A DNA stretch of 63,807 bases, filler included, from Octopus bimaculoides (taxonomy: Eukaryota): the NCBI RefSeq assembly GCF_001194135.2. It is 6 parts of 6 records of this genome, joined end to end, with 100 filler letters (N's around TTAATTAATTAA, not from the genome) between each part and the next. Parts side by side here need not be neighbours in the genome. Positions count along the whole stretch, not along the records: positions 1 to 27,988 come from NC_069005.1; 5 more parts are not named here. One strand, given 5' to 3'. A program made the translations under genes and the position numbers. Position 1 is the first letter of the stretch. The number at the start of each line of letters is the position of its first letter. The notes beneath the pieces were generated by a model. The model saw only the letters and a program-made list of their open reading frames with translations, made no database searches and was not told the origin of the DNA. Below, piece by piece: positions 2,518 to 27,637 of the stretch.

Positions 2518-3040
2518 TGATTTTAACTGATTGGAAGTGTTATCATGCACATTGTTTTGTCTTGGTATAAAAGATGGGCTACAGCAAATATTCTTCTCAA
2601 TACCAAAGATTTGCTTGTCAATTGTTTGACCTTAACCACTTGAGCATGTCCCTTAGTGATGATATGTGCATCTCTGATCATGAGCAGAAGTAGTGGGGGA
2701 GCATCATGACTATGTGTCAAAAGGAATTCTTTGGAGTTTGAATAATTCACCTCTGGAAATATGGATGTTTCATTCAACATCCTTAAACAACCCTTATTCA
2801 ATTGGGATGGGCTACTCGATCTAAAGAAAATTCTAACTGGGCCCCACCTGCGAGATTATGTGCTGTATATCTTAATATGAGATCACCCTATCACACACAT
2901 ATGGTTGTGATGCATGTGCCTGGTGTACCCTCATCAGACGGTAGTCATGATGGGTACACTGGGCTTTGTATACTTTACCTCAGTGTCACTTTGATGGCAT
3001 GCACTGCTCTTTCACTCAATAATAATAACAACAATAATAA
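2518..3040 (+). mobile_element. Unclassified interspersed repeat ending in an (AAT)n tail
   Basis: Non-coding, ends ctctcactc-aataataat. I recognise it as a common Octopus-type repeat from memory only; single copy here. Confidence 0.45.
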
Positions 3041-3045
3041 TAATA

Positions 3046-3235
3046 ATCCTAGGCCTGAAATTTTGCAGGAGGAGATTAGTAGATTACATTGACTCCATTG
3101 CTCAACTGGTACTTATCTCATTGATCTTGAAAGGATGAAAGGATAAGTTGACTTTGTTGGAGTCTGAACTCAGAATGTAGAGACTGATGAAATGCTACTG
3201 AGCATTTTGTTTGGTGTGCTAATGATTGTGCCAGC

Positions 3236-3236
<1 letters not shown>
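3046..3236 (-). mobile_element. SINE family A
   Basis: Same body motifs as 914-1128, embedded in (AAT)n on both sides. Confidence 0.8.
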
Positions 3237-3273
<37 letters not shown>

Positions 3274-3315
3274 CATAACAAACTACATGCTTTTTTTCTG
3301 GTTTTTGTAATTTAG

Positions 3316-3494
3316 GTCAGCTACATGGAAATTTACTGTGAGCGTGTACGGGATCTTTTGAACCCCAGTAACAAAAACAACCTTCGCGTGAGAGAACATC
3401 CATTATTAGGTCCATATGTCGAGGACCTTTCTAAACTGGCCGTACAATCTTTTGAAGACATTGGAAAACTCATCGATGAAGGCAACAAAGCCAG
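3316..3494 (+). CDS. unc-104: Kinesin-3 (KIF1A/B, unc-104) motor-domain exon
   Basis: tttag|GTCAGC...GCCAG|gtaagt; 179 nt. Translates [59 protein letters not shown](R), which is KIF1-type ([13 protein letters not shown]) rather than KIF13-type. Phase 0 to phase 2. Confidence 0.97.
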
Positions 3495-4110: not shown

Positions 4111-5289
4111 TCGATTAATAAATTGTTATCTCTATCTTTCACTGTGTGTGTCTGTTTCTGTGTGCTTGTATGTGTGTTTACCTATAATGCCAAAATGTAC
4201 TGTCGCCAAAAGAGGTTCAATATCCAGTCAGTCCTGCCAAATTCTCAGTGTTCAAACAGCCACATCCAGTTGTCTCTTTCTTTAAATATATTGACTGGTG
4301 TTTACTGGCAAGGCAAATGGCTGTGCAAGGTGAGCAGATAGTATAAATTAGGAGGAAACAAAATGTGATATGGCAGGGAAGAGAAGCACTTGTGGTTCTT
4401 GTAGATTGTAGATAAATAAAAAATGTGGGAAGAAAGGTAATCAATGTATGATCTGAGAAAATTGGTTTTCACAGTTGAGATGTGAAGAAATTTATTGTAA
4501 ACCTATTCAACCCATAGCAACAAGGAGAGAGACATTAAAATAAAGATAATGAATTGTTAATCTGAGGTAAAAAGAAAATAATAAATAAAAAAATGAGATT
4601 ATAATTAAGTTAATGTTTTGGATAATTAGCTTTGGATATTGTAATAAAAATGCTATTTAGAGATGAAATGGAGGAGGAACTTGAGTGTGGACATGTGATA
4701 GTGAATGGATGGTACCAAGCAACATTGGGTTGGTTTAGTGGTTTAACGAGAAGGTGTGGCATCAGCTTGTATGGTAAATAGATTATAAAATGTCACTGTT
4801 TAGAATATGTTTGAATTAAGAACTAGAATCCCTTCTCTAATGTGGCATTTTTTTGGTTTTTGATTTATGACATTCTGTTATTTTCCATTGGCCCCATGGT
4901 GGAACTATTGAGAGGTCATATAATTTTTTTTATGAATCCTTTCCCTTGACAACGTGAAGGCAAATGATCTGGTGGTTAGGCTGTTGGACATATAATCAAG
5001 TTGTGAGTTCAATTCCTGGACCAGGTGGTGCATTGTGTCCTTTGGCAAGATGCTTCGTTTCATGTGGCTCCAGTCTATTCATTTGAAAACGAGTTCCATC
5101 TGGGACAGTATGGTGTCTTGCTACCTATTAGCCTAAAATTTTCCAAATATAAGATGTCAGTGGCACTTGATGGCTATGGCACACAAGATGATGATGATGA
5201 TGTTGCTGAGTTCCTTGACTACATGTTGCTCAATGTGGAGCTCAGTTTTGAATGACATTTCATTTACAGAATGGCAAGACCACATTCCT

Positions 5290-6278: not shown

Positions 6279-6390
6279 GACCGTTGCCGCAACAAACATG
6301 AACGAAACCAGCAGCCGTTCACATGCTGTCTTTACCATTATATTCACCCAGAAAAAACTTGACCAAGCTACTAAGATGGTTGGAGAAAAG
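6279..6390 (+). CDS. unc-104: Kinesin-3 exon with switch I (SSRSH)
   Basis: ttcag|G ACC GTT...GAA AAG|gtttgt; 112 nt. (R)[37 protein letters not shown]. Phase 2 matches the previous exon. Confidence 0.97.
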
Positions 6391-8026
6391 GTTTGTGTTA
6401 GCTATGTTTGTATTTAAAAAGATTTTATTATTTAGCTCCTGGGCAGCTCTGATCAAGCAAGAATGTGTGATCAAAAGTGTTTAGTTATGACTATTTTTTT
6501 TCAAATCTTAAGCCAAATTGTCTAACATGTTCTTAATTCATTTAAAATGATAGGATCTGATTTAAGGGGTGCTAAGTGGTTATGTAGAAGTTTTCTCATT
6601 GACAAATATTGTTACCATATTCCTATTGATGTATACTGTCTTTGATTCAATTCATTTTGAAAATAATGAATTTAATTAAATTAACCTTTGTTATTATTAA
6701 GGTGGCATCTGGAATGTAAATTAGCATAAAATTTTGATGGATATTTTTCATTTAAATCACTTAACACTTTTGTTGCCATATTTCTGATGTGGTACGCTGC
6801 CTTTGCTTCAATTAATTTTGAAAATAATGAAGAATTTAATAACATTACTGTCATTATTAAAATGGTGTCTGGGACATAACATAAAAATTTTGATGGAGGA
6901 TTTAATTTAAAACAAGATCTATGGTACAAAGAAGTTTGTACCATAGATCCAGGAGGTACTTTAAAAAAAAATCTTCTATTCTGATACAGTGGTAGCCATG
7001 AAATTAAAATGCTAGATTGCAGACCTGAAAGTCATTTATTTGAACAATATTACAACTAAGAGAGCAATCATTTAAATATCATTTTCCATGCACGAGTTAA
7101 AAGGTCGAAGTTGAAGTAAGAGCAGAAACAACATGTGGGGTTATTTCCAATGATAAAGAAAATCTTGGTTCAGTCTGGAGGATGGCCCTGTACATATGAC
7201 CTTCGCTAGCCCTCCAGCATAGAAGAGCTCAAATAGTTAACAATCTTCCTCTTCAGAAAGTAAGAATTAATGGATTAGGATGCAGGGAGAGAATTCAAGA
7301 GGAATGGATGATGTTTTGGCAAGGAAGGGTTGGATTAGGGTATAGTGCAGAACTTGGTGGGTGGGGGGTAGTTATAATATGGTTGATGGAGAGATAAAGG
7401 AATTGGGAGCGCCTCAGGAGATGTGTGATACAGCCATCCAGTTCCAAGGAGCATAGTGATTGCAGTAGCAATAGAAAATGCAAAGACAGAGAGTAAGAAA
7501 GAGAGGGGAGGTAGCATGTCTGTGGACCTGATGTTGGAATGTGTTAAATGTTAGAAGACTAAAGGTTTTATAGGTCAATGACATTTTCTTGAAGATCTTT
7601 TGTTTCTCATTTTTGTTGAAAAAGAACATCACTACCTCAAAGCAAAAAAAAAAAAAAAAAATGTTACTGCAACTGTAACTATTTTCACAGTTGGATAGTT
7701 AAAGGTAACAATAATATTAACTCAAATAATATTGCCCTGCCTGTTTCACTTATCAAGAGATTTTACATATTTACTTAAATGCTACCAAGAAGTCAGAAAA
7801 GGTAAAACCAAACTTGATGTATGAGAGGTTGAGAAATGGATTAAAAACTGATAAGAAATAGAAAAAATACATTGTTTATCAAAAAAAAAAAAAATATTGT
7901 CATAGGTATAATCTTACCTGTAACATTTTTATATATTCAAATATGTTCAAATAATTTTCAAAATGAGAAAGAATTTAAGATTTTTAAAAACATGCAACAC
8001 ATCATCATCATCATCGTCATCGTCAT

Positions 8027-8255
8027 CAAGGCAGCGAGCTGACAGAATCGTTAGCATGCTGGGCAAAATGCTTTATGGAATTTCATCCGTCTTTATGTTC
8101 AGAGTTAACATTCTGCTGAGGCTGACTTTGTCTTTTCATCCTTTCGGGGTTGATAAAATAAATACCAGTTGAGCACTGGGGTCGATGTAATTAACTTAGA
8201 CCCTCCCCTGAAATTGCTGGCCTTGTGCCAAAATTTGAAGCCATTATTATTATTA
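8027..8255 (+). mobile_element. SINE family A
   Basis: aaggcagcgagctgacagaatcgttagc...ccttgtgccaaaatttgaagcc(att)n. Confidence 0.85.
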
Positions 8256-9404
8256 TTAAAAAATTTTTGTTTGGGTCATTCATTCATTCATTCATCCATA
8301 CACTCTCATGTGCTATTTCTGGAAAAACTGTAACGGTAGAGCTCTTAGGCACATCCTCCTCCATAGTATAATATGAACTTAGAATACAGTATAATATGAA
8401 CTTAGAATACAAAAGATCCAGAATAAATGCCATAAGGCATCTTCTCTGATGTTCTAACATTTCCACAAATCCATGACTCGAGACTGGTATTTAATTTATT
8501 GACCGCAGAAAGATGAAACGGTAAAATTTGACCTCGGCCTGATTTGAAATCAGAGTTCAAGGTCTTAGAATATGAATACCACAAGACATTTTGTCTACTA
8601 CTCTAACAATTTAGCCAATTCCATGCCATTATTTAGACCATAAGAGAACTGCTAAGGTTGTTAACCTTGCAAATGATAATAGATTCTGACAGATTTGTTG
8701 AAGACTTGACTGGTTGGGTAGGTGTGTACAATGTAATAAGAGTGGAGTGGATAGTATCAGAAGAAACATTGTGGTGATACGAGGAATAATAGATTTGATT
8801 GTGGTAGTGATGGTAATATACACACATATACACACTCACAAAAACCTACTCACACACTGACATATTCATCCACTTGCATATGCATACACCGACATAGCAA
8901 ATATTCTGACTCATTTGTATAGACACTTTGAACTCATTGGTGCAGACACTCTGACTCATTCACACAATACTATGACTCATTTACACACACACACACACTC
9001 ATTCATGTGTTCATACGCAGTCTGACACATTAAGACATACACTCATTTGAACATCCTCTCAAGTCGTTCACACATACCCACACTCACATGCTCTGACTCA
9101 GATGTTCCTGCACTCTGACACTTCAGCTGCTTCTGCACTCTGACTCGGGCGCTCCTGCAATCTGATTCAGGCACTCCTGCACCATGACTTAGATGTGCCT
9201 GCACTCTGACTCAGATACTCAGACACTCTTGCACCCTGAGTTAGATTCTCAGACACTCCTGTACTCTGGTTCATGGCCTTACACACTCTCCCTCATGCAT
9301 TTGTATGCACACACACACACACACACACACACACGCATTGGCTCATGCACTCTGCCTCTGACACTCATTCACTTTGACTCATACCTTCATGCACTCGTAC
9401 CCTC

Positions 9405-9779
9405 ATGCACTCTGACTCATACCCTCATGCACTCTGACTCGAACCTTCATGCACTCTGACTCGTACCTTCATGCACTCTGACTCGTACCCTCATGCACTC
9501 TGACTCATACCCTCATGCACTCTGACTCATACCCTTATGCACTCTGACTCATACCCTTATGCACTCTGACTCGTACCCTCATGCACTCTGACTCGTACCC
9601 TCATGCACTCTGACTCATACCCTCATACACTCTGACTTGTACCCTCATGCACTCTGACTCATATCCTGATGCACTCTGACTCATATCCTGATGCACTCTG
9701 ACTCATACCTTCATGCACTCTGACTCATACCTTCATGCACTCTGACTCGTATCCTCATGCACTCTGACTCATACCATTA
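9405..9779. repeat. 22-bp minisatellite (ATGCACTCTGACTCATACCCTC), 17 units plus degenerate flanks 9100-9830
   Basis: Units counted at 22-nt spacing from 9406 to 9758. Confidence 0.95.
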
Positions 9780-10267
9780 CACATTCTGACATAGACACTC
9801 ACACACTCTGACTCATTCACTCACATTCACGGATTCACACACTCATACTTACTGACTCACTGACTCATGCATTCGCATTCATTGACTCCTGCTTTCGTAC
9901 TCACAGGCTCACACATTTGTGCTGACCAACTCATGCATTTACTCTCACTGACACACATTCACATTCATCAACTCATGCACTTTTATGCTCACTGACTCAC
10001 ACTTTTACGCTCACTGGCTCTTTCATTCACACCCCAATGGGTATGCTCTTGCATTCATTCTTCAACTCCCTCTCTCACACACCTAGACTGTTATAAACAA
10101 GTCAATCAGAGGAGTAGCTACCTTCGGATAACACTGGCACATCACTTAGCCTGACTCTTCTAATCTTAAAACTACTACACAGTGACACATACACAAACAC
10201 ACTCATCATTGCATATATATCTATGTATACATATCTGTGTGTGTGTGTGTGTGTGTGTGTCTTCTCT

Positions 10268-10672: not shown

Positions 10673-11562
10673 CTGTGTGTGTGTGTGTGAATATATATAT
10701 CTGTGCATTTACATGTGTGGTTTATTTATATATACATGTATNNNNNNNNNNNNNNNNNNNNNNNNNNNNNNNNNNNNNNNNNNNNNNNNNNNNNNNNNNN
10801 NNNNNNNNNNNNNNNNNNNNNNNNNNNNNNNNNNNNNNNNNNNNNNNNNNNNNNNNNNNNNNNNNNNNNNNNNNNNNNNNNNNNNNNNNNNNNNNNNNNN
10901 NNNNNNNNNNNNNNNNNNNNNNNNNNNNNNNNNNNNNNNNNNNNNNNNNNNNNNNNNNNNNNNNNNNNNNNNNNNNNNNNNNNNNNNNNNNNNNNNNNNN
11001 NNNNNNNNNNNNNNNNNNNNNNNNNNNNNNNNNNNNNNNNNNNNNNNNNNNNNNNNNNNNNNNNNNNNNNNNNNNNNNNNNNNNNNNNNNNNNNNNNNNN
11101 ATATATATATATATATATATATATAAAGCTGACTCACTCTGTTGCTACTCCAAGTTTCTCACTTTTGCACATAATTTCCGGTAACTGGAATGGACCAATG
11201 AAAATGCAGGGTGTTTATTTACTGTGTTCCAAATTTCAACAGTTTCATCCATCCTGTTGCTGTATGAAGGAACTCAACAGATGCAAGAAACTCGGAATGG
11301 CAACAGTGTGAATCATCAGTGCTGACCACATAAACGAACTCCTATTTCATGTACTGAGTTGTTTATTTTACATGCATATTACCCTCTCTCTCTTTCTCTC
11401 TCTCACACTATCTCTCTCTCACACTCTCTCTCTCTCTCACACTCTCTCACACACACACTCTCTCTCTCTCACACGCACACACACACACACACTAGTTTTA
11501 TTAGCGAAGTAATACCTGACAACAGGACAATTGTTTCCATACATTAATGTATGTCCTTAAGG

Positions 11563-12197: not shown

Positions 12198-12520
12198 GAA
12201 GATGCATGGGTCAGTGGTTAGGGTGCCGGGCTTACGACTGCGAGGTTGTGAGTTTGATTCCTGGACCAGGCTGTGTGTTGTGTTCTTGAGCAAGTCACTT
12301 TATTTCACGTTGCTCCAGTTCACTCAGTTGTAGAAATGAGATGTGACATCACTGGTGCCAACCTGTATCAGCCTTTGCCTTCCCCCTCGATAACATCGGT
12401 GGCCTGGAGAGAGGAGACTGGTATACATAAACAACCTTTCCTGGATTTGTGTCTCGGAGGGGAACTTTCTAGGTGCAACACCATGGTCATTTGTAACCAA
12501 AGGAACTCTTTATCCTTACC
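12198..12520 (+). mobile_element. SINE family D
   Basis: cagtggttaggg...gtgagtttgattcctgg...gtgttcttgagcaagtcactttatttcacgttgctccagttcactcag; homologous to 17713-18045. Confidence 0.85.
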
Positions 12521-14164: not shown

Positions 14165-15060
14165 CACTTGCCACCATTGCCACCACCATCACCATCACCA
14201 CCACCATCACCACTACTACTATGCTCAACAGTTGTGGCTGACCACTATTACCACCACTGCTGCCACTACTACCAACACAGGCCTCTCCACAATCACTGTC
14301 ATCATTATCATTATCTTCACCATCTCCCTCATTCCACCACATCATCATCATCACAACCACCATCACCACCATCACCACCAGCCAGCCAGCCAGCCAGCCA
14401 CTACTACAGTTACCGTGTCTACTTGTTACCATTAATACAGCAACAAGCAGTAGCAGCAGCACCACTACCACCACTAATAACAACTGTACCATCATCACCA
14501 CCACTATCAAAACCATTACCACTACCACCATCACACTCTCCTACCACAACCCACCCCAGCCCCACCACCACCACCACCACCNNNNNNNNNNNNNNNNNNN
14601 NNNNNNNNNNNNNNNNNNNNNNNNNNNNNNNNNNNNNNNNNNNNNNNNNNNNNNNNNNNNNNNNNNNNNNNNNNNNNNNNNNNNNNNNNNNNNNNNNNNN
14701 NNNNNNNNNNNNNNNNNNNNNNNNNNNNNNNNNNNNNNNNNNNNNNNNNNNNNNNNNNNNNNNNNNNNNNNNNNNNNNNNNNNNNNNNNNNNNNNNNNNN
14801 NNNNNNNNNNNTCTACCACCACCACCACAACCACCACCATCACCAAAACCACTACGACACTCACCACCACCACTGCCATACTACAACCAGCTGCAGCTGC
14901 ACCACCACCACCACCACCACCACCACCACCACCACAGCCATCATCACTGAAACCCACAAGGACAATCACCACCATCATAGCTGCAGCAGCAGCAGCAGCA
15001 GCACAATCCAGACCCATCATCATCATCATCATCGTCATCACCGTCATCATAAACCACCAT
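14165..15060. repeat. (CAC)n/(CAT)n/(CAG)n low-complexity block with internal gap
   Basis: Triplet runs generate spurious poly-H/P/T/V ORFs on both strands. Confidence 0.9.
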
Positions 15061-15539: not shown

Positions 15540-16457
15540 TGTACTATAGGCACAAGGGCCTGAAATTTCTGTGGGCAGGTGATAGTCAGTTACGTTGACC
15601 CTAGTGTGCAACTGGTACTTATTTTATTAACCCTGAAAGGATGAAAGACAAAACCGACCTCAGCAGAATTTGAACTCAGAACAAAGCTTCATCCATCATG
15701 CTAATGATTCTCCCAGCTTCTTGTAGTACTACTACTACTACTAATGATGATGATGATGATGATGATATTAATAACATCAATGATAATAATAATAATAATG
15801 ATAATAATAATCCTTTCTACTATAGGCACAAGGCCTGAAATTTGTGGGGACTAGTACTTATTTTATTGACCCCGGAAAGGATGAAAGGCAAAGTCGACCT
15901 TAACAGAATTTGAACTCAGAACGAAAAGACGGACGAAATGCCGTTAAGCATATCACTCAGTGTGCTAACGATTCTGCCAGCTTGCTACCTTAATAATAAT
16001 AATAATAATAATAATAGTGCTTTCAAATTTTGGTACAAGACCAGAAATTTTGGTGGACAGATTAAGTTGATTACACTGACCCCCAGTGTTCAACTGGTAC
16101 TTTTTTTATTGACCCCCAAAAAGATACCAAGCAAAGTCAATGTTGGCAGCATTTGAACACAGAACATGAAGATGGATGAAATGCTGTTTGCCCCGTGTGC
16201 TAACAATTCTGATAGCTCACTGCCTTACTATTACTACCACTAGCATTATTATTATTAATAAGGTGGTGAGCCAGAAGAATTGTCAGCATGTATTTTGTCC
16301 CTTTCATCTGCTGCTACGTTCTGAGTTCAAGTTCCGCAGAGGTCAACTTTGCCTTTCATCCTTTTGGGGTTGATAAAATAAGCACCACTGGGGTCAATGT
16401 AATTGACTTATTCCCCTCCCTTGAAATTGCTGGCCTTGTGCTAAAATTTGAAGTCAA

Positions 16458-16460
<3 letters not shown>
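15540..16460. mobile_element. Stack of four family A SINEs (15540-15720 -, 15811-15992 -, 16018-16227 -, 16258-16460 +)
   Basis: Each copy has the gtacc/ctttcatcc/gttcaaa motifs and is separated by (AAT)n or (GAT)n. Confidence 0.85.
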
Positions 16461-16494
<34 letters not shown>

Positions 16495-16496
<2 letters not shown>

Positions 16497-17712: not shown

Positions 17713-18045
17713 GCAAAGGTGCATGGCTCAGTGGTTAGAGTATTGAGCTTACAATTGTGAGGTTGTGAGTTCAATTCCTGGACTTGGGCTTTGTGTTGTG
17801 TTCTTGAGCAAGACACTTTATTTCACGTTGCTCCATTTCACTCATCTGTAGAAATGAGCTGCGATGTCACTGGTACCAAGCTATATCGGCCTTTGCCTTT
17901 CCCTTGGATAACATCGGTGGAATGGAGGAGGGATGCTGGTTTGCATGGGTGTTCCATATCCTTGCCCAGTCTTGTGCCTTGGAGGGTAACTTTCTAGGAA
18001 CCATTCCATGGTCATTCATGACTGAAGGGGGTCTTTATTCCTTTT
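17713..18045 (+). mobile_element. SINE family D
   Basis: tggctcagtggttagag...gtgagttcaattcctgg plus the CORE-like segment. Confidence 0.85.
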
Positions 18046-18690: not shown

Positions 18691-19542
18691 TCCAAATTTT
18701 GGCTCCTGGCCAGGAATTCTGATGGGCAGTGGAAGTCAGTTACATTGACCCCACTTTATTTCATTGACCGTGAAATGGTAACAGATGAAGCCAACGTCAG
18801 TGGGACTTTTACTCAATGTAAAGAGTCAGAAGAAAAGATGCTAAACTTTTTATCTGACATGTTAACTATTCTGTCAGCCCACTACCTTAATAAGAACAAT
18901 AACCCTTTCTTCTATAGGCACAAGGTCTGAAATTTCAGGAGAGGAGTTAAGTCAATTACATTAATCCCAGTACACAACTAGTACTATTTTATTGACTCTG
19001 AAAAGATGAAAGGCAAAGTTGACCTTCATGGCATTTGAACTCAGAACGTAAGGATGGATGAAATGCCGCTAAGAATTTTTCACAGTGTGCTAATGATTCT
19101 ACCAGCTCACTGCCTTCAAAATACTTTCAAGTTTTGGTACAAGGCCACTAATTTTGGCGGGCAGTGAAATAGTTGCTTACAATGACCTCAGTGTTTCACT
19201 GGTACTTTATTTTATCTATCCTAAAAGGATGAAAGGGAAAGTTAATCATGGCAGGATTTGAACTCAGAGCAAAAAGAAGTGAGGAAAAAAAATGTTACTA
19301 AGCATTTTGTTTGCAACAACAGCAATAATAATCCTTTTTACTCCAGGCACAAAGCTTGAAATTTAGGGGAGGGTGTAAGTCAATTATATTGACCCCCAGT
19401 ACTCAACTGGTAGTTAATTTAGTGAGCCCCAGATGAAAGGCTAAGTCAACCTTGGTGGAATTTGAACTCAGAACAAAGATAAATGAAATGCTGTTAAGCG
19501 TTTTGTCTGGCATATTAATTATTCTGTTATCTTACTGCCTTA
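18691..19542 (-). mobile_element. Head-to-tail stack of four family A SINEs
   Basis: Copies at about 18691-18889, 18903-19116, 19123-19312 and 19331-19542, all on the minus strand. Confidence 0.85.
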
Positions 19543-19967: not shown

Positions 19968-20165
<198 letters not shown>

Positions 20166-20494: not shown

Positions 20495-20860
20495 CAGTGT
20501 TCTTCAATCTGTTTCACTTATGGTACACTTATATTCTTTCCAAAATTCGGTGGCACACCTGAACTAAAAATATAACTAAAGATATAGGGAAAAAAATTAT
20601 AGGGGAGGAAAAAAAGTAAAGGGAAAAAAATTATTGGGGAAAAAATTATAGGGGAAAAAAGTATAGGGAAAAAATTATAGGGGAAAAAAGTATAGGGAAC
20701 AAAAAAGTATAGGGAAAAAAATTATTGGGGAAAAAATTATAGGGGAAAAAAGTATAGGGAAAAAATTATAGGGGGGAAAAGTATAGGGAAAAAATTATAC
20801 TCAGGTTATACTGCCACACACCTAGTATTGTCTCGCGGCATACTGTTTGGCGGAGCATTG
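20495..20860. mobile_element. hAT-like non-autonomous element containing a minisatellite
   Basis: 8-bp TSD gtctaaat (20487-20494) / gtctaaac (20861-20868); degenerate TIRs cagtgttc / caatgctc. Confidence 0.6.
20582..20800. repeat. ~16-18 bp degenerate minisatellite (tatagggaaaaaaat / tataggggaaaaaag)
   Basis: Visible tandem units of TATA-G3to6-A5to7. Confidence 0.9.
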
Positions 20861-21515: not shown

Positions 21516-22434
21516 CATCGCCGATTCCTATGGATCGCATAAATTGTAATTCTTCGAAACATATGTCGGAATAAAGTATGCAGTTATAACATGCGTTTTC
21601 TCCATTCCTTAAATTTTTAAATATATNNNNNNNNNNNNNNNNNNNNNNNNNNNNNNNNNNNNNNNNNNNNNNNNNNNNNNNNNNNNNNNNNNNNNNNNNN
21701 NNNNNNNNNNNNNNNNNNNNNNNNNNNNNNNNNNNNNNNNNNNNNNNNNNNNNNNNNNNNNNNNNNNNNNNNNNNNNNNNNNNNNNNNNNNNNNNNNNNN
21801 NNNNNNNNNNNNNNNNNNNNNNNNNNNNNNNNNNNNNNNNNNNNNNNNNNNNNNNNNNNNNNNNNNNNNNNNNNNNNNNNNNNNNNNNNNNNATATATAT
21901 ATATATATATAGGAAGAGCAGCTGACTATCATCAAAATGACTGATTGTTGTATGTCATAAAATATAAAAATTGACCGATAGAAAGTCATAACTGCAACAT
22001 AGTATTTACTGTTTAGGCATCTTAACAATATGCACTTATGATCTGTTGTCTATAGCTGGTATGGTATGATGCCTAACTGATTTCTTGTGTTGCTGAATTT
22101 ATCAAATGTCAGTTATTGATCTATAGATCTGAAGTTTAGTTTCTGAAGGAGTGACAACTCTTTGATATCTGGTGCTCTCTGGTAGCTGAGTTACTGTTGT
22201 AATATAATAACTGAAGGTTACTGCCATATCATACTTGAATGATGCAGATAAATGATTGCTATATATATATATAATTAAAGACCATAAGTGTTTGAATATT
22301 GACTGTTGTTATATTGGCCAGAAAAGTCATAGATGAGGGGGTTTTACTTCATTTTCAAACTACTCTGTTTTTTTTATGAGATTTCTATCCCCACCTTTTT
22401 TTTTTACATTCAAAAGTTGTTTTTGCTTCAGCAA

Positions 22435-22479
<45 letters not shown>

Positions 22480-22748
22480 TTTGCAAAGTAAATTCCTTTG
22501 AAGTCTGTAAGCAATTTTTTGGCCTTTATATTTGATCGTGATATTGTCTTCAACTACATTTACCAATATTTTTTTCAATATGAAACAACATTGTGTTGTC
22601 AGTGGAGTTGGCTGTCATAATTTGACTTATCACATTATTAAATTTTTTTTTTCCTTAATTTTAAGTTGGGAAGAAACTCGGATTAAAAATGTAGATACAT
22701 ATTTTTCATTCATTATTCATTTTTATTTTATTTTTACCTTTTGTGCAG

Positions 22749-22766
22749 AGTGCTGAAGGGATAAAG
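22749..22766 (+). CDS. unc-104: Candidate 18-nt microexon (SAEGIK) in loop 12 of the kinesin-3 motor
   Basis: AG-free T-rich tract 22695-22746, tgcag|AGTGCTGAAGGGATAAAG|gtaagg. It is a multiple of 3, phase 0 and stop-free. Same position and length as the 6-aa vertebrate exon as I recall it (KIF1A DSGPNK, KIF1B DNCTSK). Confidence 0.8.
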
Positions 22767-23439
22767 GTAAGGCTTTTAAAAGGGGTCTGTGTATGTGATA
22801 TTGTCCTCCTTTATGTTTGTGGCTAGCTATGAAATTGCTCCTAAATGTTTGTATGTATGTGCCTTTGTCCTCTGATGTAGTGCAGTTTTCCGATATAGGT
22901 AACCAAGACTTAGTGCAACACATGCACCTTAAATACTCCAACAGAATCCTCCCAGTTCCTTTAAAACAAAACCCTTCATGTTGATAACAAAACATTTATA
23001 GTGCACATCTATTGCTTTTCTTATCAGTCTAAAAAATGGTTTGAGAATTATTCAGGACCAGAAGATAAATAGAATATTTTATTTAAAGTTTAGAAAATAT
23101 TTTAGGAAGAGACAAAGAAAACTTGTTATATTTTTATTAGTTTGAATTCTAAAATATTCTAATGTTCTTGTTGTTTAGAATCATAGAAATGTTTTTACCA
23201 ATTCTTCAAATTTTACTTAATATTCTGCTGAAGATGTTTTTACATAATTCTTTGTTAATGAAAGAAATGATGAGTTGAAAGAAAAGAAAAAAAATTGGAA
23301 TTGCTTGATAGACATGAATGGCACCTTTCCTTCACAATGTCTTCTCTGTGTTATAGCAGAAAAAAAAAAAGAATAGAATTAAGCAGAAATTCTATTTATT
23401 CTATAAAACCTAATTCTAACCAAAGGGATTAACAGATAT

Positions 23440-23864
23440 TGCTACCAAGAATGTAGCATGACCAAACCTGAAGACTTTCCCATCTCCAGTGATCCAACAG
23501 TGTGTTTGGTACATTGTTTAAACTGCAACCTAAGAGGTGAAAGGGTGAGGCAATTGAGACTGGTATTAGAACTGAGATAGGTGCTACTAAAACAGTACCA
23601 TATTGTATTCTGCAAGAATCCTAAGACATAGTTGTGAAATCTGAGGTGACTTGTGATCACCAATCCTCAGGATAATATCTCTGCTAACTAAATTAGCATG
23701 TAATAGATTTATAATAATAATAATAATAATAATAAGGTTTAATTGAATAATAATAATAATAGTAATAATAATAATGTTGATAATGATAAAGACAACAAAA
23801 ACAATGATAATACTGATATTAATAATAATGACATTGATAATGATAATGAGAACAAGAATAATGA

Positions 23865-23925
<61 letters not shown>

Positions 23926-24525
23926 CAGGTATCGAGGAATATAAAGGAAATCAGATTAGTGTGCTCCTTGGCATAGCAAGAATCATCAGAAAAATATTAG
24001 ATAGTTGAAAAGAACAGGTAGCATGGTACTGTAAGCTGCAGGTAGCAATCCTCTAGGAGTTCCAACAAAATCTGAGTTAATAATAATAATGATAATTGGG
24101 GTACAAAAATTCAAACGGATACGCAAAGGGAGCATTTAAACTCAATAGGCTAAGGGAACAGTCAAACCCAATACTCAATAAAGATAAAAGTGTTGCTTAA
24201 TCAATGTTGCTTGCCCATTTTAATACAAGAATGCTTGACAAAGAATGTGAGAAAATGAAAATGTCAGAACCCAAAATATGGACTTCAGAGAATCTGGAAT
24301 TACTGTAAAGTTATCATTTTCTCAATTGTAATAGGAGCCCTAGGAACTGTTGCAAGGATTTTTAATGGTTAGTTTGAAGATATTGGCTATTGAAATATGA
24401 ATTTTTTAACTCAACAGAAACCTAGTTTGTTTGGCCCAGCAAGAACCATATGAATGGTGCTATGCAACTTGATATCTTGCAGTCTAATACTAGCAGAACA
24501 ACAATGAAATACTGAGTGAGCAAAA
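23440..24525 (+). pseudogene. Three successive R4/Dong-like 3' ends (about 23440-23710, 23925-24080, 24105-24525), each followed by (TAA)n
   Basis: Terminal motifs SARILRH, VLLGIARIIRKIL and IVIGALG match the RLE C-terminus seen at 2350-2390. Confidence 0.7.
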
Positions 24526-24550: not shown

Positions 24551-25340
24551 AATTTTGGAATGCGGCCAGTAATTATGAGAAGAAAGGTTGGTTACCTTAA
24601 CACCAGTGCTTAAGGGATTTGAACTCAGAACATAAAACTGGAAGGAATGCTGCTAAGCATTTTGTGTGGCATGCTAATAATTCTGCCCACTCACTGCTTT
24701 CTGTAACGATGATAATAATAATAATCCTACTATAGGCACAAGGCCTTAAATTTTGGGGGCGGGGACTAATCAATTGCATCGACCCTAGTGTTTCACTGGT
24801 ACTTAATTTATCAACTCCCAAAAGATGAAAGGCAAAGTGAACCTTGGCAGGATTTGAACTCAAAACATAAAGACGAATAAAATACCACCAAGCATTTCAT
24901 CCAGCATGCTAAAGAATTTTGACTGCTATTTTATTACATTGACCTTTAAAAAAACTGACAGTCAAAGTTGATCCCTTTGGGGGTTAACTTCATCATTTTG
25001 TCAGGTCACTAAAATAAAGTACCAGTCAAAAAACTGAGGTTGATAATATCAAGTAACTCTCTCCTGTGAATTTCATGTCTTGTGTCTATATTGGAAACCA
25101 CAACAACAATGATATTAATGATGATTTCAAACTTTGGCACTAGGCCAGTAATTTTTTTTTTGGGGGGGGGTTGATTACATCGACCCCCCCCCCCCCATGC
25201 TCAACTGGTACTTATTTTATTGACTCCAAAAGGATAAAAAGCAAAGTTGACCTTAGTGGGATTTTAACTTGGAACATAAAGATGTATGAAGTGCTGCTAA
25301 GCATTTTGCCTGGTATGCTAACGATTCTGTTAGCTCACCA
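24551..25340 (-). mobile_element. Stack of family A SINEs (24551-24700, 24723-24910, 25125-25340 minus; plus-strand fragment at about 24960-25100)
   Basis: Family motifs repeated, separated by AAT runs. Confidence 0.8.
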
Positions 25341-25474
25341 CAAGGGCCCAACACAAAAACAAATAGGGACGATATAAAACAAGGGACATGTGGGCTTTAG
25401 CACAAAAATCAAGTATACAATAAAATAACAATGAAAATTCTAACAACTAAAATCCCCAATAGGAGGAATTAGAA

Positions 25475-25499
25475 AATGATGATGATGATGATGATGATG

Positions 25500-25587
<88 letters not shown>

Positions 25588-25605
25588 TGATGATGATGAT
25601 AATGA
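25475..25605. repeat. (GAT)n-(AAT)n-(GAT)n compound microsatellite
   Basis: Direct. Confidence 0.95.
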
Positions 25606-26624
25606 TAAAAAGAAGAATTAGAAAAACTAATGATAATAATAAGAATTAGAAGACACAACCCTAGACCACTTCAGGTATGTTACCTTTACNNNNNNNNNNN
25701 NNNNNNNNNNNNNNNNNNNNNNNNNNNNNNNNNNNNNNNNNNNNNNNNNNNNNNNNNNNNNNNNNNNNNNNNNNNNNNNNNNNNNNNNNNNNNNNNNNNN
25801 NNNNNNNNNNNNNNNNNNNNNNNNNNNNNNNNNNNNNNNNNNNNNNNNNNNNNNNNNNNNNNNNNNNNNNNNNNNNNNNNNNNNNNNNNNNNNNNNNNNN
25901 NNNNNNNNNNNNNNATATATATATATATATATATATAATACTATTGGTGTATGGCCTATAATAAGGCCAAGTCTGTGACAAATTATTTTACAGTTTAAGC
26001 ATTTGTGTAGACCAGACATTTTCAACCAACGTACTCCAATAAGGCATACATAAAGCCTACAAGCATGCCTACAAATGGCCAGCAGGTATGCCTACAATTC
26101 TTGGAAGGCAAATTTAAAAATAAAATATCAAGACCTTGAGAATAGCTGAGTGTTTTTTAATGTACCTCACCGGTGCACTGGTGCATGTATATTTCTTTGT
26201 GTTGAAGTGCAATGAGTGTGTTTATCTGTTCATCCCTATTATTTTAAAACAGTTTCAGTACTTTTTTTTTCCTTTTATAATAAAATCTTTAAAGAAAGCT
26301 GATGGTGTCATATCACTTTTTTAGCACTTAATCTAGTGTGTTGATGATTAAAAAAGCAAGGATTAAAATCCTCAATGTAGACTGTGTACACATTATATTC
26401 TCTTCACTTCTCTTTCCTTCTCACTGTCAAGCCTGCAGTACATGTTGTTAATATTTACTCATTTATGCACACATTCTTCACATTGTCTATTGTTGTTGTT
26501 GATTTAGATTGAAATATGTACGTAATATTGATTTTCATTGGTCACCTCATTACTACCATCGTCTTCTTTCCAGCTACTTCCACCTGCCCTTATATAATGA
26601 GGATAGCCCTGTATCTCATCTGTT

Positions 26625-27421: not shown

Positions 27422-27637
27422 AATGGTTTCAAATTTTAGCACAAGGCCAGCATATTCATGGGAGGGGGTAAGTTGATTGCATTGACCCCAGTACTCAACT
27501 GATACTTATTTTATCAATTCCGAAAGGATGAAAGGCAAAGTTGACCCTGGCAGAATTTGAACTCAGAACATAAAGGCAGATGAAATGTTGCTAAGCATTT
27601 TGCACCAGCATGCTAATGACTCTGCCAGCTTGTCACC

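Follow-up and report, generated by a model that had tools for sequence, protein, structure and literature searches.

The K-loop governs how readily kinesin-3 motors land on microtubules and how readily they stay there, and its lysine run touches the acidic tails of tubulin. An 18-nt stretch within an intron of Octopus bimaculoides unc-104 raises the question whether a microexon is inserted into loop 12 in front of this lysine run and, if so, how it is related to the six-residue block that vertebrate KIF1A and KIF1B possess at this point. The window, i.e. the whole stretch of DNA analysed here, comprises 63,807 nucleotides including filler; the locus lies in its first piece (positions 1 to 27,988).

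The host gene and its introns

Judged by sequence similarity, the first piece of the window represents part of O. bimaculoides unc-104, the orthologue of KIF1A/KIF1B, which encodes a kinesin-3 axonal transport motor. Its motor exons were mapped on the plus strand by means of tblastn, using a KIF1A probe and the retrieved proteins (Table 1). For all three motor exons of the window, the identity to Octopus unc-104 proteins is 100%. The best match among solved structures is KIF1A (8utn, E = 4e-191), and in this alignment the insert corresponds to the residues DSGPNK of loop 12. The matching full-length proteins contain PF00225 as well as the tail domains FHA, KIF1B, DUF3694, and PH. As a further kinesin-3 feature, the insert is succeeded by the K-loop VSSKKKKKTDF in every O. 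bimaculoides isoform. The exons for both the K-loop and the FHA/KIF1B/DUF3694/PH tail lie outside the window. A search of the piece for the K-loop exon (VSSKKKKKTDFIPYRDS), which comes next in the gene, showed that it is absent; more than 5.2 kb of intron must therefore follow the microexon.

Two initial protein searches covered hits of less than 1.75 times the length of the query; they yielded mostly read-through ORFs extending into introns and no cephalopod protein. Full-length proteins were reached with a query in which the motor segment was repeated five times in tandem, and the key results were rechecked by exact-sequence look-up. A Pfam scan of six intronic ORFs elsewhere in the window gave no match.

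Table 1. Features of the unc-104 locus; positions count along the window.
Feature	Position	Strand	Remarks
Motor-domain exon (59 residues + split R)	3316..3494	+	tblastn, match to unc-104
Motor-domain exon (split R + 37 residues), contains switch I	6279..6390	+	tblastn
Upstream constitutive motor-domain exon (48 residues)	19968..20111	+	ends in phase 0, donor GTAAGT
Assembly gap, 266-nt N run, in the intron that separates the microexon from the ISALADV exon	21627..21892	.	
3' splice region: AG-free tract 22695-22746 and acceptor AG 22747-22748	22695..22748	+	
18-nt cassette microexon AGTGCTGAAGGGATAAAG, peptide SAEGIK	22749..22766	+	sequence and exact peptide match to RefSeq isoforms
5' splice site GTAAGG after exon-final AAG, near-consensus	22767..22772	+	
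SINE-like element, ~250-300 nt	922-1158, 3037-3277, 15552-16075, 18909-19148, 19198-19414	+	
SINE-like element, further copies	24614-24936, 25145-25376, 27430-27600	+	
SINE-like element, inverted copies	8004-8258, 16302-16496		

The introns are rich in repeats and interrupted by gaps. The SINE-like element is present in at least 10 diverged intronic copies (60-83% identity) in both orientations, often with a (TAA)n tail. A second repeat family (12199-12428, 17716-17946, 5000-5085) has a head that looks tRNA-derived (GGCTCAGTGGTTAGAG...GGTTGTGAGTTCAATTCCTGGAC); an intact tRNA gene was not called by ARAGORN anywhere in the window. Positions 9123-9964 are occupied by a minisatellite (22-nt period, about 38 copies) that shows a strong C-over-G strand bias, with a GC skew of -0.48 in that kilobase. 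Just 3' of the ISALADV exon, the intron bearing the microexon contains a purine-rich tandem repeat (20583-20799; 15-nt period, TATAGGGGAAAAAAT, about 14 copies). Imperfect trinucleotide arrays (ATA/ATG/ACT) at 23662-23960 and 25412-25680 are located in the intron downstream of the microexon and yield long spurious N/D/T-rich ORFs on both strands. Three of the four assembly gaps (10742-11100, 14582-14811, 21627-21892, 25690-25914) are bordered by TA-rich (TATA...) simple repeats; because of these gaps, all intron lengths given for the piece are approximate. No repeat family found in a search of the window spans the microexon, and a transposon origin of this exon is therefore unlikely.

Splice signals and annotation of the microexon

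The ISALADV exon terminates in phase 0 with the codons GCA GAC GTG, followed by the donor gtaagt. The microexon begins 2,637 nt beyond this exon, a distance that is approximate because of the intervening 266-nt gap and that agrees with the 2.6 kb given by a preceding sequence-only reading. Its codons AGT GCT GAA GGG ATA AAG encode SAEGIK without a stop. The tract in front of the acceptor is AG-free over exactly 52 nt and consists of 75% pyrimidines; the nearest AG on the 5' side occupies positions 22693-22694. The CAG acceptor lies in the context ...ttttaccttttgtgCAG, and the sequence immediately 5' of the microexon is ...tttttaccttttgtgCAG. At the donor (AAG/GTAAGG), five of the six intron positions correspond to the consensus GTAAGT. 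The exon falls within the definition of a microexon (at most 27 nt, a multiple of 3, flanked by AG and GT sites), and its splice signals are competent. Each element of the splice anatomy that the sequence-only reading had described, from the AG-free tract and the CAG to the 18 stop-free nucleotides in phase 0 and the donor, proved correct when rechecked. A minus-strand ORF of 90 codons (22726-22995) overlaps the microexon; it was set aside, because nothing points to a gene there.

Short intronic sequences can resemble exons by chance, and the stretch might be an unused pseudo-exon in which sequences similar to splice sites happen to enclose 18 stop-free bases. The pattern as such is not rare: 10 naive candidates of the form AG-18 nt (stop-free)-GT were counted in 7.9 kb of intron of the piece. 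A strict filter was applied to the same 7.9 kb, demanding a YAG acceptor, absence of AG from the 25 nt before it, a pyrimidine content of at least 70%, and a GTRAG donor. Over all exon lengths from 3 to 30 nt, the microexon was the sole survivor. Moreover, the exact peptide occurs in annotated proteins. Seven RefSeq isoforms of O. bimaculoides unc-104 (X1, X2, X4, X5, X6, X7, X9) read ISALADV-SAEGIK-VSSKKKKKTDFIPYRDS, with the lysine run VSSKKKKKTDF directly behind the insert, as claimed by the sequence-only reading. These entries (P0355, P0356, P0358, P0359, P0360, P0364, P0366) have the accessions XP_052832525/6, XP_052832527, XP_052832529, XP_052832530, XP_052832531, XP_052832532, and XP_052832534. 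The older XP_0147860xx series and UniProt A0A0L8FXD6 likewise contain SAEGIK.

Skipped forms were sought by deleting SAEGIK from isoforms X1 and X4, followed by an exact-sequence look-up. Both deletion products are on record, namely XP_052832528.1 (isoform X3, 1766 aa) and XP_014786052.1 (earlier release, 1752 aa); they differ from the inclusion models solely by the absent SAEGIK. Since models with and without the insert exist, two annotation releases already treat the exon as an alternative cassette. The expectation that ORF finders miss the exon is valid for such programs, but the gene-annotation pipelines did catch it. Orthologous exons with the pattern AGTGC...AAR/GTAAG exist in a cuttlefish and a bivalve genome, and an orthologous insert is found in a GenBank entry of Doryteuthis and in assembled cephalopod transcripts (see below). 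A chance origin thus has practically no probability left: it is refuted by the isoform matches, the skip models, and the orthologous exons of cuttlefish and bivalve. The exact matches in seven isoforms together with the skip isoforms identify a real, alternative 18-nt microexon of loop 12 in front of the lysine run. It is a confirmed, ordinary feature that is already known in this species, with both splice forms present in public gene models.

Inserts at the same site in molluscs and other phyla

Among cephalopods, O. sinensis and O. vulgaris carry the insert SASEAIK (21 nt), and a skipped form was not seen in these two species. One model of Argonauta hians has no insert and represents a skipped form (P0239). 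In Acanthosepion pharaonis, an inclusion model with SADVGK (P0383) exists beside a skipped one (P0339). Logan contigs that cluster at 90% with squid and cuttlefish contain SADVGK or SADLGK (P0375, P0376, P0379, P0381, P0382, P0237) or lack the insert (P0377, P0380). These contigs of about 5.7-6.6 kb harbour ORFs of about 1,735 residues and are therefore regarded as spliced RNA. The GenBank kinesin-3 of Doryteuthis pealeii (ABY75514.1) reads SADAMGKK; here, a skipped form was not seen. Bivalves possess SAMDIK, SAMDLK, or SAYDPK, with a skipped form in Saccostrea, and gastropods possess SAETK, SAETR, or SVETK (15 nt each) or SSMDPK, with a skipped form in Biomphalaria.

For two of these lineages, the exon could be located in genomic DNA. 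The cuttlefish exon AGTGCGGATGTGGGAAAG (L003 31556-31573) is enclosed by the sites ctgtacag/ and /gtaaga and is identical to the octopus exon in 13 of 18 nt. It lies 21.8 kb past the ISALAEV exon and 13.7 kb ahead of the K-loop exon. AG and GTAAG splice sites are conserved in another coleoid, which the sequence-only reading had named as a test of its proposal. The Tegillarca granosa model P0085 reads ISALAEV-SAYDPK-SNKRKKKADFIPYRDS, and in the genome SAYDPK is encoded by a separate 18-nt exon (AGTGCTTATGATCCTAAA, L001 19045-19062) with ag/ and /gtaagt sites between two larger exons. The mollusc consensus is S-A-x-[D/E]-x-K; the exons start with AGTGC and end with AAR/GTAAG. On the basis of position and sequence, these inserts represent an orthologous microexon in the same phase-0 intron of cephalopods, bivalves, and gastropods. 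Intron and phase are identical. The sequences flanking the octopus exon cannot be aligned even with those of the bivalve, and when 300-nt flanks of octopus, cuttlefish, and bivalve were compared in a three-way alignment, no convincing conserved intronic element emerged past the splice sites. The O. bimaculoides exon and the vertebrate KIF1B exon both have 18 nt, but the idea of a kept length does not hold for the molluscs as a whole, where inserts of 15, 18, 21 or 24 nt occur.

Alternatively, the exon could be effectively constitutive in octopus, the skip models being rare splicing noise and not part of a regulated K-loop switch. Indeed, all 14 octopus models first listed carry the insert, the skip models surfaced by exact look-up only, and few reads may underlie those in RefSeq. 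In addition, the DSGPNK block is present in every sampled KIF1A-type sequence except one fish model, and a term search of the mouse neural/alternative-exon table (PMC8797185) gave no 18-nt Kif1a exon in the matched passages. However, the O. bimaculoides skip models stem from two independent annotation releases, and Argonauta is annotated in the skip form. Both forms also exist in assembled transcripts of decapodiforms and among the models of Acanthosepion, Saccostrea, and Biomphalaria. We therefore consider a constitutive exon improbable.

Outside the molluscs, vertebrate KIF1A reads ISALAEM-DSGPNK-NKKKKK (P0156), with DTGSNK or DSAPNK in fish and DSGPIK in lamprey. Vertebrate KIF1B reads ISALAEV-DNCTSK (P0101) or, when the exon is skipped, ISALAEV-SKKKKK (P0129). 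The phase-0 intron following the codon after ISALAE is common to vertebrates, molluscs, and others, as deduced from read-through ORFs and isoform pairs. ORFs reading past this codon start with V-S or V-R, and the intron is widespread in animals. The positional match to the vertebrate six-residue block that the sequence-only reading had pointed out is thus borne out for KIF1A as well as for KIF1B, including the phase-0 intron. A nemertean model contains the insert SNNRTNT (21 nt), which has no terminal Lys.

Insect unc-104 isoform pairs differ at the junction by one Ser (EI-S-ASKNKK vs EI-ASKNKK). In Trichoplusia ni, a candidate 3-nt microexon TCG (Ser; L004 20268-20270) with a sound acceptor and a donor matching the consensus (tattatag/TCG/gtaagt) sits in the 2,230-nt intron between ISALAEI and ASKSKKSKK, and the one-Ser difference of the isoforms fits such an exon. 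A 3-nt, eMIC-dependent unc-104 microexon of Drosophila (DmeEX0010000, chr2R:16762097-16762099) is listed in the PMC8797185 supplement. It is a candidate for the loop-12 counterpart and agrees with the one-Ser difference in insects.

One further sequence was initially regarded as another cephalopod because it contains ISALADV followed by a read-through (P0114/L002). This assignment was rejected, as the animal has a compact genome in which this site shows a lone 63-nt intron without a separate microexon. In the respective contig (Logan SRR18067444, 3400-3470), the only intron after ISALADV is 63 nt long and the next exon starts with SAAKTRKSKKTEF, giving SAAKTRKSKK. The start of this exon could represent a microexon that joined the K-loop exon when the intron between them was lost.

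Putative function, origin, and comparison with known systems

The octopus sequence is very probably best explained by a symmetric, phase-0 cassette microexon of 18 nt that inserts SAEGIK into loop 12 of unc-104 in front of the K-loop. Upon inclusion, SAEGIK is placed between ISALADV and VSSKKKKKTDFIPYRDS, directly N-terminal to the lysine run; upon skipping, ISALADV runs straight into the K-loop segment. Inclusion is predicted to lengthen loop 12 by six residues, among them one acidic (E) and one basic (K) residue, such that the net charge would be unchanged. The insert would presumably shift the spacing and reach of the K-loop as well as the local electrostatics. By analogy with the equivalent six-residue insert of mammalian KIF1B, for which such an effect is reported, the shifted K-loop might tune the on-rate of landing on microtubules and the affinity for them. 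A switchable six-residue spacer beside the K-loop would be a compact means of tuning axonal transport.

Inclusion may be favoured in neurons via the Srrm234 eMIC pathway, a weaker part of this model that is suggested by the UGC at the octopus acceptor and the strong donor, both typical of such exons. SRRM4-dependent microexons are marked by a UGC motif and a strong donor (PMC13174390); the octopus UGC at positions -5 to -3 (ttgTGCag) agrees in location with this SRRM4-binding motif, and the donor is GTAAGG. The UGC is missing at the acceptors of cuttlefish (ctgtacag) and Tegillarca (tataaaag). The motif argues weakly for eMIC dependence, because it is not kept in cuttlefish and bivalve and because a UGC within 15 nt is common by chance.

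The value of the octopus exon is comparative: it belongs to a mollusc-wide microexon with the motif S-A-x-[D/E]-x-K that occupies the same intron as the vertebrate exons. The sequence-only reading had considered both an ancestral bilaterian microexon and a convergent one. All 18 compiled loop-12 inserts from molluscs and vertebrates possess exactly one Asp or Glu and a terminal Lys or Arg; otherwise, their sequences are unrelated. Such a rule may reflect shared ancestry or a common functional constraint on the spacer and points either way.

We lean slightly towards the assumption that the mollusc exon and the vertebrate KIF1A/KIF1B exons arose independently in one ancestral intron. The K-loop offers a favourable target for tuning. 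As the host intron is ancient and shared, any exon born there maps to the same position of the protein; the positional match alone is therefore no proof of homology. The sequences have only the terminal Lys and the one acidic residue in common, and the length varies from 15-24 nt in molluscs to 3 nt in insects and 21 nt without a terminal Lys in the nemertean. Torres-Mendez et al. 2022 favour convergence for an unc-104 exon, not further specified, whose position is shared by fly and mouse. Likewise, in a 2026 preprint on 20 bilaterians, O. bimaculoides among them, APBB and MADD are the only cases named as ancestral-bilaterian neural microexons. On the other hand, the exon is found in every sampled bilaterian superphylum, represented by chordates (among them lamprey), molluscs, a nemertean, and insects. 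It is always in the same phase and always symmetric, and the 18 of 18 inserts that combine one acidic residue with a C-terminal Lys or Arg are less easily reconciled with independent origins. Furthermore, the lamprey block DSGPIK is similar to SAEGIK of octopus and to SAMDIK of oyster.

That the mollusc and vertebrate exons descend from a common ancestor is a serious possibility that falls somewhat short of being probable. More tentative is the proposal of a single ancestral bilaterian microexon of 15-24 nt that would have retained one acidic residue and the terminal Lys in molluscs and vertebrates and would have been cut to 3 nt in insects. If true, this single-origin exon would be the third deeply conserved (~700 Myr) neural microexon beside those of APBB and MADD and would reverse the preference for convergence that has been published for the loop-12 site. 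The site may serve as a test case for whether neural microexons persist since the bilaterian ancestor or re-evolve at functional hotspots.

Among known systems, the Doryteuthis pealeii protein ABY75514.1 is an orthologous cephalopod kinesin-3 with the orthologous insert at the same junction as in octopus. Its insert comprises eight residues with an extra Lys, compared to six in octopus; we came across no text that treats it as an alternative exon. The insect candidate exon shares the junction and contributes only a Ser (3 nt), whereas the octopus exon has 18 nt.

The octopus protein shows its greatest similarity to KIF1A, and its six residues take the place of DSGPNK; with the lamprey version DSGPIK, the octopus insert shares the C-terminal IK. 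In contrast to the vertebrate KIF1A block, which is without a matching 18-nt entry in the passages of the mouse table concerned, the octopus exon has annotated skip forms.

In this respect, the vertebrate KIF1B exon is comparable. The 18-nt exon of mouse Kif1b (MmuEX0025502) is given as eMIC (Srrm3/4)-dependent in a supplement table (PMC8797185), and deletion of the zebrafish kif1b microexon leads to a mild social-behaviour phenotype (PMC12626424). The Kif1b microexon alters motor activity (Matsushita et al. 2009, as cited in PMC12626424). For the vertebrate exon, neural specificity, Srrm3/4 dependence, an effect on the motor, and the zebrafish phenotype are hence documented, whereas the octopus exon is known from sequence and gene models. 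DNCTSK and SAEGIK each contain one acidic residue and a terminal Lys and are otherwise unrelated. Nevertheless, the KIF1B exon (mouse MmuEX0025502, zebrafish EX0041536) and the octopus exon occupy the same intron in phase 0 with a length of 18 nt, and both are cassette exons for which both forms exist, located directly in front of the poly-Lys K-loop.
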